Positions 54,701-60,403 of a DNA stretch of 64,000 nucleotides are shown here, in pieces. The position numbers were made by a program, and so were the translations under genes. Source of the stretch: Ministeria vibrans ATCC 50519 (Eukaryota > Protista > Filasterea); assembly GCA_943704425.1 (NCBI GenBank), contig CALSCP010001329.1, positions 27,755 through 91,754 of the forward strand, read 5' to 3'. The notes beneath the pieces are model-generated. The model worked only from the letters and a program-made list of their open reading frames with translations. It made no database searches and had not been told where the DNA came from. Position 1 is the stretch's first letter. Each line of letters opens with the position of its first letter.

Positions 54701-57700
54701 TGGACGCATGCCAAGCGTTGACGCGCAACGTCTCATTGAGCGATGCTGCTTCGACAAGCGGCACAGTCGCGGCCATCAGTAGGTGACGAACAAACTTGTG
54801 ATGCGAGAAGGATTGAAGCCGTGAAGTGAGCAGAGAAACCGATACAGTAGACGGAAGCGGGTCCCATTGGGTCTGTTGGGTCCAGTCGATCGGCGGCGGG
54901 GTCTCTGAGACGGAAATAGATTCGCGACCCTTGAGTTTTGACAGCGACTCAAGCGCGTCGTTTGCCAGGCCGGCCGCAAATGAGTCCAGAAATATGTGCC
55001 TAATTAAGATAAAGGAAGGGAGGGAAGAACAAGATGGACGAGTTAGTTTCTCTTCATTTTTCAACATTACTCTTTCTCTTTCTCGCTCTTTCACTTTGTT
55101 TCTCTCTCACTCTTTTTACTCTCTATCATTTTGTTTTTTTTTTCTCTCCCCATCTCCTCTTCTCTTTCTCTTTCTCTCTCTATCACATTGTTTCTTTCTC
55201 CTCTCTCTCTATTATTTGTTTCTTTCTCCTCTCTCTCTCTCTAGTTTGTTATGTTTACTTGAGTGGAACTGTGTCAATGTGGAGAAGAAAGACATGCGCG
55301 AGGACGTCGACCAAAAAGCTGGCGTGTACTGTATCGCCCAGACCGCAACGAAGTAAGATCTTTTCGAGGTCTACTATGCACTAAAACCATGATGATAATA
55401 ATAAACAGACGATAAATTAACAATATATTTAATAATAATAATAATAATACCTGATGATCGCAAGGGCATGGAATGGATGCGGAGGCGATGAAATGGCGTA
55501 GACGGAGGCAGGCGATGGCGGCATCGTGCACAATGGTGGAAGGAGGTGAAGGCAAAAATGACCTTTCGAGAAGGGTGTGGGCTGTCGCAATGCAACGAGC
55601 GGACATGAGCAGCTCCGTGGATACACGCTGAATCGTTGCGGGAGTGCTTTCTGCGGGTGTGGAGCACGACGTGACGAGTTTCAAAAGACGCTCCACACCA
55701 TGGAGGTGGGTGGCAAAGCCGACATGAAGACGCGAACGCAACGAGAGTTTTTTCTCGTTCGAGTCAAGTTTCGGAGTGGGCGAGGCGAGAAGAGACTCGA
55801 CAACGCGCGAAAGGGATGAATCTGTGGCGAAGGGGTCCTTTGTCGGGTCCATCGATACTGTTGTCACCGTTGTCTTTGCCGCCGCCGACGACCCCGGCGA
55901 CGATGACGTTGCAGGTGACTGCAAGGGGAAGAGGGTGTTGAGGTCGCCGGGAAAGTCCTCGCGGCCAAGTCGTCGGCGCATTTGGACGTGCGTTCGCGAA
56001 GTGTCAACAGTGAGACACATTTCGAGCGCAGTCAGCAAAGACTCCTGAAAAGAAAACGGACAGGAGAGGGAGAGAGAGAGAGAGAGAGAGAGACAAGGAA
56101 CACACAGAGGTGAGTGAGTGGGTGTTGAGAGCGGTGACGTGAAGAGTCAACTTACGAATACAGGGCTTTCAAGTGACTGCTCGCGCGAAGCGAACCGCCG
56201 CTCAATATGATGCAACGCGTACTCGAGGATGTCGAGGACGCTGTCGAGGACGCTGTCCACAACTAACAATACCAAAGAAGGGCAAACATCAGAGAGAAAG
56301 AGAGAAGCGGAAAGGCGGAAGAAGCGCGAAAAAAAGAAGAAAAAAAAAACGAATACGGTCGAACGAATGGGAAAGTATCGACAGAATCAGAGGGAGGGTG
56401 CGCACGAGCATCGTGGCAGGCACAAGGCAGCAGACGGGCCACGAAGAGATGGCGCAGGGCGACGACGCGACAAGGGAATGAGAGCGCAGAGTTCTTTTTT
56501 CTTGTGCGTCTGCGGCTGACCTTGGCAATCCCAGGCATCGCCGCGCGCCGAGAAGCTCGACGCGGCGATCTTGACCAGGTGGGCCATGTAGACACTGGAT
56601 GCATCGTCGTCGGTGAGAAGAAGTCCCTGTCTCAGACGGACACTACAAGGAGAGAGAGATGGAGAGAGAGGGGAGAGATAGACACGACAAAAAAGACACA
56701 AGTCAGCATTTTTTTTTCGTTTTTTTTTTTTTTTTTTTTTTTTTTGTAGCGTACGTCGGGTGCTTTTTGGACGTTGGAGAGCGTCGCGACCTGTGGATTG
56801 AAAAGCATGGGCACAAGAAGCACACACCTACGACGTGCGTTGAGGAATGCAAACAGGCGGGCTATCGGTTTGCGGCTGTGCAGAATGGCGGCACTGACTG
56901 CTGGTGTGGGATGAAGTACGGTCTGTATGGCAGTGCGGGAGCCATCTGTGACAGGGCGTGTACCGCGGACAAGACACAAATGTGTGGCGGTTACCTTGCC
57001 AACGATGTTTTCATGACTGGTGTCGACATGGCTACGCCCAAGGGTCGAGTGGGTTGCTACAAGTCGGCAACGGACCCCTTGGCGGAGTTGAGTGCGCAGC
57101 AGTCGGCTGAAGTCCTGTACACACCTGTAACGTGCCCGGTGGCGTGTGGTCGTGCTGGTTTCAAGTATGCGGCTCTTCGCGAGGGCTCCAAGTGCTTTTG
57201 TGGCAACACGTATGGTGCGGCGGGCACTGCGGGTGCGCTGTGCAACTTGCCGTGCGCAGTGGACCAGTCCTATGTGTGTGGTGGCGCCACGAGTTGGGAT
57301 GTGTACCAGGCGACCAGTGAGACGCCTTCTGTGCCTGCCGGTGCCTTTGCTATGCCGATGCCGCTGGAGCACACTTGGCACGTGGACACTAATGGTGATT
57401 TTCGTCTCGTTTGAGAAGTGAGAGGAGAGAAGAGAGAAGAGGAGAGGGAAAGTGTCATTGAGGAATGAACTGAACTTAATCATTCATAAAATATTTTCAA
57501 AATAATCACAATTTTATTTTGATATTCATCAACCCTCATCAAAAGAAATGTCTGGATACCAAACTGTCGAATCGGGCTCGCCCAACACCCTTGAATACAA
57601 GGTTTACTTCAGTAAGAAAAGCGACTCTGCTCTTTTACCCTGGGTTCTCTGCTCTTCTATTTGTGGGCTGAGTTTCGTGCGAATCACGTGCAGGGCCAAG

Positions 57701-60403
57701 CGGCTCCTCTCTCCCCTCTCCTAGTTTGGTTTTCATGTGTTCACAGCCAATGGTGTGTGGTTCGTCGAGACAATTGGGTGTTGTGGGGAAAGGGATGCGT
57801 TTCGTTGAGGATGGCGATGATTTTTGCTAAACACTTTCGTTGTTGCATGTAGAGGATGCCTCTGGCGCACTTGTGAGTCCCTTTTATGATATTCCTCTGT
57901 TTGCCGTGCATCGTGGAAGCTCAATTGGTCTGGTTTCACGACTGCAATCTGAGAGCGGTCGCTGCTGCACACGACAAGCCACGCGAACACACCCTTACAC
58001 TCGGTTGGCGGGGTGTACGACGTCACCAGCTCGCGTGTCGCCATGTCCCACAGTGCAAGGTCACCGTCGGCAGCAAGCGAGACAACGGCAAGATCATCAC
58101 CGGGAATCGTAACCACCCACACCACGCCGCGCTTGTGATGCGCAAGCTTGCACAGCAGCGGTGTATTCGGTGGCTCAAGGCACGGCGGCTGTGCCCACGC
58201 AAGCGACATCCACAGCGGGATCGACTCGGCTGCCCGCTCAATCGAAGACATCAGACGCGCCACAACGTTGTTCTGCGCCTCGAGACCGCGCAAGCGGCCG
58301 TGTAGTTGGCGAGCAAGCGAGTGCCCGTTGTCAAGGTCGTTGCGCGACAGCCGCAGCGTCTTGACGAGAATCTCCAGGTCGGTGTTGACGTGAGCTGCTC
58401 CATAGGCCACATTGGCATCTTCGAGTGTGGACAGTGACACGTCGAGGCAGCGGCTCCACCACGCAAACTCGACGAGCAGCTCTTCGGCGTCATTCGTACG
58501 CTCGGCGCTCACCAGATGGTACACGTAGTGCTCGTAGAAGTAGTCGTCGTCCTCCGTCTCCCACAGGTCGCCCGTCGTACTCGCTTCGTACGCCGACAGC
58601 AGCTTGACGTGGCGCTGGCGGACATTATCGCAATAGAATGCGGCAAAGTCGTGTTGAAGATCATGCAGGAATACGGCTGAGCCGTCGGCATTCTCACGCA
58701 AAAGAGACCGACCGACGAGTTCGTCGACGACGCGGCGACCAAGGCGAAGACGAGTGCAGAGCTCCTCCTCGCTCCAGAGCATGTCGAGTGTGTCGCGTGG
58801 AATGGCGCCGCCACGCGAGAACACGGCGAGGTCGAGATAGCACTCTGCCAGGCCCGGCTCGTCGTCGAGGCTGAGCTTGATCGTGCTGTAGAGCGATACG
58901 TGTTGCTCATCCTCGATGGCCTCACCCCAAGCAAGCTTAGCATTGACCAAGTCCTTCTCGTAGTTGATCCACTGGAGATCGCGATGTCCGCGGAGCTGGG
59001 CGCCAACAATGCCGAGGGCGAGGGGAAGCCGGCCAACGGCCTCGATAATACTTGTGGCGATGCGTGGAAGCACGTCGAGCTCGGCCACACGCCGCAGCAT
59101 ATCTTCGGCGAGTTCAGGTGTAGGGACTTCGAGGGATAGACGGAACGTCTTGGGGAGGAACGAGTCGGAAATACGCGTTGTGACCAGAAGCGCACGACCA
59201 GGTGCGGCGGTCCAGTGGCGCTGCAATGTTTTCACATCGGCACAGTCGCCCGACCAGACGTTGTCAAGGACGAGCAGGGCAGGCGTTGATTCCGCGTATT
59301 TGCACAGCCAACGGCACATATCGTCGACCGACTGCATGGCTTCATCCGGCGCCTGCGTAGGAGCGCCGAAAAAGGACGCGAGCGTGGCGAGGGTGTGGAT
59401 GAACGGCTGTTGTTGCGGATCGTCGCGTCGCTTCAGAAGCCAGGCAACGCGCGTCTCTGTAAAATGTTCACTGACGCGCAGGTCTTGCGCAACGGCGGAC
59501 GCCAGTACCGACTTGCCGGTACCGCCCATGCCGGTGATGACAACAGTCTTGCCGCTGGTGCCGGTGTCAGTGAGCATTTCACTGACAATCATGTCCGTCT
59601 CCATGGCACGCGACGCGTAGTGGCTAAGTGGCGGTGGCAGCTCAAAGTCACAAATGCGCGGCGTCGCCTTGGCCTCGAGCTCGTCGACCTTTGCGACCAG
59701 TGCCGTGATGTATTGTAGGATTTCTTTGCTCAGCGGCGGGGGCGAGTCGATGAGCTCTTGAAATTCGCCCAGTACGTCGCAGTTCGCAGGAAGCGCCCGG
59801 TCGAGGAGCTCCCGGAGGTTGTCGGTGAACTTGTCGAGTGTCGCCTGGGACAGCCGCTTGTTTTTGTGCTTGTGGATCCACTTGTTTCGATCGTCAAGTG
59901 CTCTCCGGAGCCACTTGTCGAGGACACGCGGCGCGTCAGCAGCGTTGAGGAGAAAGTTGAAGACAAACGTCTCGTCGCCGTCGGCGGCGGCGTGCACGGA
60001 TGATTTGGTATTCGGAGCAAGAGCACTCGCAAGGGACCACGACAGCTGACTCTCGTCGGTCGCCCATGCGGCCGGGTCGACGTTGAGCAGGCTAGCGGAG
60101 GACGCGCGATTTGTTTTCGCTTTTTTCAACGCCGTCTCCCAGTGCTTCGCGGCGTGTTTTTTTTTTTTTTTTTNNNNNNNNNTTTTTTTTCGCGAAGAAA
60201 ATCAAGTGAGAGGAAATGGGTAGGGAGGAGTTACACGGGGAACAGGAAGATAGTTTAAGTAGGGAAAGAGATGGTAGAGGAACGAGAGAGCTGTTGCAGA
60301 AACGAAAAAAAAAGCATTTCGTCTACCTGAGAGCCGACGCCAAGAGACAATAGTGGTCATGTTCCGCGCACCCATCCGCGAACGCAACAGCCACTTTCTG
60401 CAT
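38727..60403 (-). CDS. UBR4: E3 ubiquitin ligase UBR4/BIG/p600 (model of 5764 aa)
   Basis: Model exons 60403-60327, 56642-56521, 56262-56156, 56044-55451, 55380-55259, 54999-38727; all GT-AG, phases consistent, total 17295 nt. UBR box (CTF...WYYCYTC...CCSVCVQVCHAGHD...FFCDCG), CPRC...CRECRNINY...CNECG, and C-terminal hemi-RING CMICREGY...HFHLVHANCH. Exon 1 assignment is inferred. Confidence 0.9.
56750..57414 (+). pseudogene. Terminal exon of a tandem WSC-domain protein; no upstream exon or start in the window
   Basis: Two WSC domains (YVGCF...C...C...GY.FAAVQNG..CWCG...C...C....CGG; VGCY...CFCGN...CGG) after a (T)26GTAG acceptor. Upstream DNA is the antisense of a UBR4 intron end. Confidence 0.75.
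57548..57905 (+). pseudogene. PPA1: 5' fragment of family I inorganic pyrophosphatase (exon 1, intron, start of exon 2)
   Basis: MSGYQTVESGSPNTLEYKVYF, intron 57612-57852, then KDASGALVSPFYDIPLFA; matches the IPP1 N-terminus (NTLEYKVY...SAFHDIPLYA). The expected NMVVEIPRW continuation is absent. Confidence 0.85.
57733..60156 (-). CDS. Truncated STAND NTPase / NLR-like protein: HEPN-like, NB-ARC, APAF1-like helical region, WD40
   Basis: Intronless ORF with Walker A GMGGTGKS, Walker B LLVLDNVW, LLVTTR, GRLPLAL, MHD-like LHDLQHD, WD40 (HHKRGV..V...DGDLALWD), and RNKWIH near the N-terminus. Cut at 5' by poly-A/N-gap; the last ~57 codons are antisense PPase sequence. Confidence 0.85.
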   Translation of the reverse strand, partial: HAAKHWETALKKAKTNRASSASLLNVDPAAWATDESQLSWSLASALAPNTKSSVHAAADGDETFVFNFLLNAADAPRVLDKWLRRALDDRNKWIHKHKNKRLSQATLDKFTDNLRELLDRALPANCDVLGEFQELIDSPPPLSKEILQYITALVAKVDELEAKATPRICDFELPPPLSHYASRAMETDMIVSEMLTDTGTSGKTVVITGMGGTGKSVLASAVAQDLRVSEHFTETRVAWLLKRRDDPQQQPFIHTLATLASFFGAPTQAPDEAMQSVDDMCRWLCKYAESTPALLVLDNVWSGDCADVKTLQRHWTAAPGRALLVTTRISDSFLPKTFRLSLEVPTPELAEDMLRRVAELDVLPRIATSIIEAVGRLPLALGIVGAQLRGHRDLQWINYEKDLVNAKLAWGEAIEDEQHVSLYSTIKLSLDDEPGLAECYLDLAVFSRGGAIPRDTLDMLWSEEELCTRLRLGRRVVDELVGRSLLRENADGSAVFLHDLQHDFAAFYCDNVRQRHVKLLSAYEASTTGDLWETEDDDYFYEHYVYHLVSAERTNDAEELLVEFAWWSRCLDVSLSTLEDANVAYGAAHVNTDLEILVKTLRLSRNDLDNGHSLARQLHGRLRGLEAQNNVVARLMSSIERAAESIPLWMSLAWAQPPCLEPPNTPLLCKLAHHKRGVVWVVTIPGDDLAVVSLAADGDLALWDMATRELVTSYTPPTECKGVFAWLVVCSSDRSQIAVVKPDQLSFHDARQTEEYHKRDSQVRQRHPLHATTKVFSKNHRHPQRNASLSPQHPIVSTNHTPLAVNT

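Follow-up and report, generated by a model that had tools for sequence, protein, structure and literature searches.

HEPN domains fused to STAND NTPases have been described in cnidarians, cephalochordates, bivalves and bacteria (PMC3710099, PMC8298618). CXorf38, an uncharacterised human immune-cell protein, was introduced as the type of a new HEPN family within the Swt1-like clade by Anantharaman et al. (2013, PMC3710099), together with CXorf38-NACHT fusions and bacterial HEPN-STAND proteins. The domain DUF4559 has been linked to CXorf38 (PMC4554924) and is found in 45 of the 99 NACHT-containing NLRs of a clam (PMC8298618); in the human protein the motif reads 162-RNEIMH, and an Asp-His dyad has been proposed (bioRxiv 10.64898/2026.05.28.728550). 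A second type, the DZIP3-type HEPN-NACHT proteins, reaches up to 83 genes per anthozoan (PMC8260672, PMC10236652). Here we analysed a stretch of 64,000 nucleotides of the filasterean Ministeria vibrans ATCC 50519 (GenBank assembly GCA_943704425.1, contig CALSCP010001329.1, positions 27,755 to 91,754), which we call the window and to which all positions below refer. Its minus strand carries a long open frame that a sequence-only reading had taken for an intact, intronless innate immune receptor with an N-terminal HEPN RNase followed by NB-ARC, APAF1-like helical and WD40 domains. We find that this frame holds a truncated copy lying inside an intron of UBR4, and that complete relatives of it are encoded elsewhere in the same genome.

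The family to which the copy belongs shares with the described CXorf38 proteins the Pfam match of its complete paralogues, the conserved RNxxxH motif with an upstream Asp, and the position of the domain N-terminal to a STAND NTPase, as in the NACHT fusions of cephalochordates, cnidarians and bivalves (PMC3710099, PMC8298618). It differs from them in that the NTPase is NB-ARC/Apaf-1-like and followed by WD40-type repeats rather than combined as NACHT-LRR or with dsRBD, in that the Zn-ribbon cysteines have been lost in the subclade of the window copy, and in that the host is a unicellular marine eukaryote. With the DZIP3-like HEPN-NACHT proteins it has in common an N-terminal HEPN domain on an expanded NLR-type family, presumed to be an RNA-directed immune or death effector (PMC8260672, PMC10236652), whereas the HEPN family (PF18738 there, PF15112 here) and the NTPase clade are different. 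The order of NB-ARC, winged helix, helical domain and WD40 is that of Apaf-1/CED-4/Dark; unlike these, the family carries HEPN instead of CARD, so that no caspase recruitment is implied, and the window copy is devoid of propellers. In Avs-type anti-phage STAND NTPases a nuclease effector is activated through STAND oligomerisation. An N-terminal nuclease effector switched on in this manner would likewise be shared with the bacterial HEPN-STAND proteins (architecture in PMC3710099), from which, as from Avs, the family differs by a eukaryotic HEPN type and WD40-type repeats; PADLOC returned no significant match to a defence system. An effector RNase mounted on a STAND protein is a published design and is not new. 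What is somewhat new is the combination of a CXorf38-type HEPN with an Apaf-1-like NB-ARC and WD40 in a unicellular eukaryote, together with the expansion of the family.

A truncated NLR-like copy inside a UBR4 intron

The minus-strand frame at 57733-60129 comprises 798 open codons and continues open further upstream, up to a gap of N within a poly-A run. Much of what had been read from it by eye was borne out. The string GDETFVFNFLL is located at 59979-59947 and its conserved Asp (59976-59974) precedes the motif RNKWIH, which lies exactly at 59889-59872 where R-N-x-x-x-H had been placed. The NB-ARC module is complete, carrying Walker A (GMGGTGKS, 59532-59509), Walker B (LLVLDNVW, 59277-59254, a D-N variant also found in the paralogue C1982), TTR (59190-59173), GRLPLAL (59034-59014) and an LHD motif. 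The APAF1-like helical region was recognised as APAF1_C (PF17908, 23.2 bits against a cut-off of 22.8) and the winged helix before it scored slightly below its cut-off of 27 (PF21296, 25.9 bits; 38.4 bits in paralogue C1982). GC content at third codon positions (GC3) is indeed high, 0.72 compared with 0.62 in the adjoining UBR4 exon and 0.64 in the closest paralogue. The WD40 array, in contrast to what had been claimed, is reduced to about two blades with weak matches; the remainder is gone.

The extent of the copy became evident from comparison with its relatives in the organism's own genome (29.7 Mb in 2,860 contigs). The protein of the closest paralogue, a 1,409-codon frame on contig C2424, aligned by tblastn with 56% identity, its residues 100-846 matching 60141-57910, while codons 1-99 and 847-1409 had no match anywhere in the 64-kb window; a search of the genome agreed on the extent of homology. 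The fragment thus defined corresponds to ~745 middle codons of paralogues that measure ~1,400 codons, and the truncation is likewise seen in an alignment with four full-length paralogues, homology to which ends at 57910. The copy lacks HEPN helix 1, which in the paralogue on C1907 spans residues 10-45; this shows both in the alignments and in an AlphaFold model of the fragment. The first in-frame ATG codes for residue 176, just ahead of the P-loop, and none precedes it. Because it has no start codon, no HEPN helix 1 and no sensor, the window copy is unable to perform the mechanism that we propose below for complete members of the family.

Transcript data place this copy within an intron. In two sequencing runs with the behaviour of RNA (X1 and X2), contigs connect 56642 with 60327 at a depth of 103-136 and also 56262 with 56521; neither of the two joints is present in the DNA run X5, one contig of which spans 57718-60145 without mismatch. 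The ends of the long joint read CT..AC on the plus strand, i.e. GT..AG on the minus strand, and the large frame downstream is UBR4 (PF13764, E 2e-241). The block of 3,684 nt is a 5' intron of UBR4, and the NLR fragment is removed with it. A kinetoplastid-like polycistronic origin was discarded, since genes in the neighbourhood occupy both strands and cis-spliced GT..AG introns occur. Inside the NLR fragment we found only RNA contigs of depth 2-4, as expected from pre-mRNA. The window copy is therefore not a gene and not a working receptor, and the innate immune receptor that had been assigned to this locus is a headless and tailless copy spliced out with the UBR4 intron.

Several observations weigh against regarding the copy as dead. 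The 798-codon frame is open and every NB-ARC motif in it is intact. With the paralogue on C2574 as outgroup, 73 amino-acid changes are unique to the window lineage and 50 to C2424 (chi-square 4.3). Given an open frame, intact motifs and an excess in rate that is modest, decay has been slight and function is possible. RNA contigs of low depth are present on the fragment, their strand not being readable from the contigs, and further sequence could be concealed by the N gap of the poly-A run. Accordingly, we considered a functional gene nested in the UBR4 intron and serving as decoy or regulator of the full-length paralogues, either as a HEPN-less NB-ARC/helical protein initiated at the ATG of residue 176 or spliced to an unseen 5' exon. 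The intact frame with its P-loop, Walker B, GLPL-type and LHD motifs, the modest acceleration and the low-depth RNA contigs at 58641-58886 and 59683-59896 would fit such a gene. However, the frame contains no ATG before the P-loop region, no RNA joint connects the fragment to any exon, and the depth is 2-4 where the flanking exons reach 103-180, a difference that pre-mRNA would explain. Moreover, the frame ends in 59 codons that run antisense to a pyrophosphatase sequence and have a GC3 of 0.41, and the sensor and HEPN helix 1 are missing. On this evidence a nested gene is quite improbable.

A complete gene might also have been obscured by the assembly, hidden by the poly-A/N gap or cut by a chimeric join. 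The assembly is fragmented (2,860 contigs), 9 N stand within the homopolymer at 60172-60180, and the contigs of DNA run X5 stop in this homopolymer from both sides. Yet independent DNA contigs (57227-57747 and 57718-60145) cross the breakpoint at 57906/57910 with zero mismatches, the RNA joint between 56642 and 60327 has canonical splice sites, the CT-rich, non-coding sequence upstream of the gap leads after 144 nt to the UBR4 5' splice site, and codons 1-99 and 847-1409 are matched nowhere in the window. An artefact of this kind is hardly credible. Taken as a whole, the data make it likely that the fragment is a truncated, probably non-functional copy derived from a lineage-specific HEPN-NB-ARC-WD40 family whose complete paralogues would act as RNase oligomers.

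The DUF4559/CXorf38 domain and its predicted dimer

Exploring the N-terminal 170 residues of the copy alone, we found DUF4559 (PF15112) as the sole notable Pfam match, with an E-value of 3.7e-4, its score falling short of the cut-off, and covering profile positions 83-188 of 305. The fragment by itself scored 20.5-26.8 bits against this profile, the upper value coming from the genome search, and 27.2 bits with neighbours in frame included, over profile positions 64-188 of 305; the cut-off is 27 bits. HEPN_DZIP3 (PF18738) had no Pfam match in the N-terminal domains scanned, while five of the six gave sub-threshold matches to HEPN_Swt1 (PF18731, E 0.006-0.26) that coincide with the motif helix.

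Two alignments were built, one of ten N-terminal domains from the organism's own genome (A1) and one of 76 homologues (A2). In A1 the residues W, D, F, L, R, N and H are invariant; most copies carry the motif as RN-x-W-A-H, the window copy as RNKWIH and the copy on contig C716 as RNQSAH. Conservation of R and H among paralogues had been named beforehand as a test of the HEPN assignment, and R, N, H and the upstream Asp did prove invariant in all ten domains. Searching 1.84 billion representative proteins with the A1 profile gave 368 hits at E<=1e-3, and all 16 hits that were sampled are DUF4559 proteins. Their architectures include NACHT-LRR, multiple dsRBD, NB-ARC-TPR, NB-ARC-DUF7779 and a glycosyltransferase - TRADD-N - DUF4559 - NPHP3_N arrangement; WD40 occurred in none of these 16. 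Across A2, in which column identity averages 14%, N and H never vary, and conservation reaches 90% or more for R, D, two W and an E-x-x-K pair. Since R, N, H and Asp are conserved in 10 paralogues and 76 homologues, the motif is not a chance occurrence. The cysteines of the family Zn ribbon (CxC...CxxC) are found in the A2 consensus and in paralogue C879 (L037), whereas C2424 and C2574 have none of them and the window copy is missing the whole segment. Judged from its sequence, the N-terminal domain of the window copy belongs to DUF4559/CXorf38, which has been placed in the Swt1-like clade of HEPN families. The HEPN identity that had been claimed for this N-terminus was thus correct as to family, the domain itself being truncated and without helix 1.

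To examine the fold, we modelled the intact domain of the C1907 paralogue with AlphaFold2 and alignment A2 (pLDDT 90, pTM 0.87). The model has a long helix 1 (residues 10-45), a small hairpin in place of the family Zn ribbon, a helix at 119-127, and one at 144-153 that the conserved Asp caps. A helix at 161-175 ends with R171-A175, H176 opens the loop that follows, and the next helix spans 184-199. The Rx4-6H motif of HEPN domains is located at a helix end and the start of the following loop (PMC3710099, section 7), and the C1907 model agrees with this. Modelled as a homodimer, the C1907 domain reached an ipSAE of 0.68, whereas the best of three controls reached 0.01; the ipSAE mark was reached by 21 of 30 proteins whose solved structure is a pair of one and the same chain and by 0 of 23 whose solved structure is a single chain (17 of 29 and 0 of 30, respectively, for eukaryotes). 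The homodimer runs share at least 56% of contacts, with a partner pLDDT of at least 82. The predicted interface is formed by residues 1-26, 142-145, 175-180 and 219-230, residue 175 of one chain touching residue 175 of the other. Given these interface residues, the His loops and the Asp would come together at the predicted two-fold axis, an arrangement known from canonical HEPN dimers, and helix 1, the element that the window copy has lost, is predicted to supply a large part of the dimer interface. The homodimer prediction is support from modelling and not proof.

The case for a catalytic HEPN domain has to be set against several points. Comparison with solved structures singled out no HEPN fold: a Foldseek search of the N-terminal model against the PDB returned no match at E<=0.001. 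VIA-align, run over 48,161 chains, gave helical-bundle matches at the level of noise, placing Cas13a, AbiF and AF0298 at Z 5.1-5.4 and generic helical bundles at up to 6.7. The A2 profile against PDB sequences yielded coiled-coil noise only, which came from the C-terminal extension. Furthermore, RNase activity of CXorf38-family proteins is a prediction in the literature consulted. The domain may instead be a non-catalytic helical adaptor that serves in oligomerisation or RNA binding only. Such a role would agree with fold searches in which no solved HEPN structure stands out, with the lack of any reported enzyme activity of the CXorf38 family in the literature consulted, and with the fact that the window copy and the two paralogues closest to it have other residues in place of the E-x-x-K pair (E122, K125), which is conserved to at least 90% across the family. 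On the other hand, R, N, H and Asp are strictly conserved despite a mean column identity of 14%, as is usual for catalytic residues, the motif stands at the position typical of HEPN, and the His loops are predicted to meet at the two-fold axis. We therefore hold an adaptor to be unlikely.

Complete paralogues and their proposed mechanism

The sequence-only reading had called for a search for full-length paralogues, and at least four complete HEPN-NB-ARC-repeat genes were found on other contigs, all of them single-exon. Those on C2424, C2574, C1982 and C1907 are single open frames of 1,354-1,457 amino acids counted from Met. A six-frame search of the genome with PF15112 detected eight loci, six of which are at or over the cut-off, and at several loci beyond the four complete genes DUF4559 is fused to long open frames. 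The C1907 protein matches DUF4559 over residues 6-248 with 44.6 bits (E 1.7e-11), and its score reached 47.8 bits in the genome search, in which five further loci are over the cut-off. WD40 matches are strong in C1982 and weak in C2424 and C2574. Searching the protein collection with full-length C2424 retrieved only two distant NB-ARC proteins of 25-29% identity, indicating that the family is without close relatives of comparable length in the collection searched.

For these complete paralogues we infer the following as the most likely mechanism. The repeat array would keep the NB-ARC switched off until a ligand binds and the nucleotide is exchanged; the protein would then oligomerise, so that its N-terminal HEPN domains pair up. 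In each dimer two RNxWAH loops, together with the conserved Asp, would form a composite, metal-independent RNase site that may cut cellular or viral RNA. The idea that WD40 sensing triggers RNA cleavage, advanced for the window copy, does not hold there and may apply to the complete paralogues only. That C2424, C2574, C1907, C1982 and others are Apaf-1-like, WD40-sensing oligomers with a CXorf38-type HEPN RNase effector is a tentative proposal, possible but some way from probable. If it is true, the intronic fragment would be a by-product of the birth-and-death turnover of the family.

Other members of the family depart from the complete form. An NB-ARC paralogue on G000:C138 (L020:2239-7767, minus strand) has a frame of 1,843 codons with a caspase-like N-terminus (GHG ... 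DACKAG) and no HEPN; because this N-terminus stands in place of HEPN, the family appears to swap effectors. On G000:C2170 (L036:1315-2058, minus strand) a HEPN-only frame of 248 amino acids shares 83% identity with the N-terminus encoded by the C2424 gene before it diverges, and on G000:C2414 (L025) C-terminal pieces of the family are split across two frames. These broken members, C2170 and C2414, represent birth-and-death turnover. On G000:C2424 (L016:7023-9500, plus strand), a new frame opens immediately behind the stop of the complete paralogue; it carries a P-loop (GAPGCGKST) and continues into a long run of N.

The intronic mosaic and its meaning for the family

The intron holds a mosaic of ~3.7 kb that consists of a WSC exon, the promoter, exon 1 and intron 1 of a pyrophosphatase gene, and the NLR fragment in reversed orientation (Table 1); the pyrophosphatase and NLR pieces are joined tail to tail at 57906/57910. 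In the pyrophosphatase copy the ATG lies at 57548, exon 1 ends at 57611 and intron 1 spans 57612-57852.

Table 1. Position, strand and basis of the features recognised in and around the UBR4 intron
Feature	Position	Strand	Basis or remarks
UBR4 intron (GT..AG, 3,684 nt), holding the whole mosaic block	56643..60326	-	RNA contig joint 56642-60327
Copy of the last exon of a WSC-domain gene, with two WSC domains	56744..57414	+	PF01822, E 2e-29
Copy of spacer and of inorganic pyrophosphatase exon 1, intron 1 and first 54 nt of exon 2	57415..57906	+	C1986 alignment, parent translation
Non-homologous 59-codon tail of the open frame	57733..57909	-	Antisense of the pyrophosphatase fragment; GC3 0.41
NLR-like gene fragment	57910..60141	-	Homologous to codons 100-846 of a 1,409-codon frame, closest paralogue G000:C2424
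Remnant of WD40 array, ~2 blades	57910..58149	-	Weak beta-propeller/WD40 Pfam matches, residues 661-752
Apaf-1-like winged helix and APAF1_C helical domain, combined	58438..58845	-	PF21296, PF17908
APAF1_C helical domain	58438-58617	-	Residues 505-564
Apaf-1-like winged helix	58645-58845	-	Residues 429-495; LHD motif 58671-58648
NB-ARC NTPase	58864..59583	-	Pfam PF00931, E 3e-13, residues 183-422
Partial CXorf38/DUF4559-type HEPN domain	59710..60141	-	Without helix 1 and Zn-ribbon segment; Asp and RNKWIH kept
Poly-A run including 9 N (60172-60180)	60146..60182	-	Directly upstream of the NLR fragment

Both borders of the mosaic are marked by poly-A on the minus strand (60146-60190 and 56700-56745). 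The 5' border consists of ~37 nt of poly-A with 9 N and the 3' border of 26 A, CG and 9 A; CG followed by 8-9 A occurs at both, resembling a target-site duplication. Homology to the WSC parent begins 6 nt inside the last intron of that gene (TTGTAG). Such borders could have arisen if a chimeric template was retroposed by target priming, or if the block was inserted into an A-rich tract.

The plus-strand part (56744-57906) is 80% identical at the DNA level to G000:C1986:30637-31767. Within the WSC exon (56744-57414 compared with L027:1501-2171 of C1986) the differences by codon position are 25/9/50 and the frame is kept; C1986 is probably not the direct source of this exon. A difficulty for our reading is that neither the assembly nor DNA run X5 holds a parent copy of at least 90% identity for either part. 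We rejected a recent duplication from a parent present in the assembly, since DNA identity reached no more than 69% for the NLR part and 80% for the WSC/pyrophosphatase part, and X5 showed no second contig of at least 90% identity on the NLR part. Long neutral decay since insertion was rejected as well, given the open frame, the small excess in rate and the mainly third-position differences of the WSC exon. The third-position bias of the WSC exon, the intact NLR frame and the 73 versus 50 changes suggest that the sequences had largely diverged before the block was inserted. They also suggest that the loci from which it really came have been lost or are missing from the assembly, and that there has been little neutral decay to date.

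An X1 contig (depth 4.45, no mismatch) shows a plus-strand splice, GT..AG, from 57552-57611 to 57853-58070 and extends 165 nt into the antisense of the NLR fragment, yielding a chimeric antisense RNA. As this spliced contig reads from it, the captured pyrophosphatase promoter is weakly active, and the fragment might be kept as a template for antisense RNA from this co-inserted promoter. On the UBR4 side, the RNA contigs define small 5' exons on the minus strand (56155-56262 and 56521-56642) and a long first exon that begins at 60327 and extends past 60900. The UBR4 start codon (MAHLVK...) is likely within exon 56521-56642, which would place the 3.7-kb intron within the 5' untranslated region.

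For the window locus these findings are a correction: an apparently intact one-exon receptor should not be annotated or counted as such. The mosaic, with its poly-A borders and a captured promoter that is still active, shows how families of this kind shed fragments. For the family, the use of a CXorf38/DUF4559 HEPN as the effector domain of NB-ARC-WD40 proteins in a marine protist widens the taxonomic range of HEPN-NLRs, and its single-exon genes offer R, H and D residues that could be tested for RNase activity. If our proposal for them is true, the complete paralogues would be a unicellular-eukaryote counterpart of the animal HEPN-NLRs and would provide a tractable route to testing the RNase function predicted for the human CXorf38 family.

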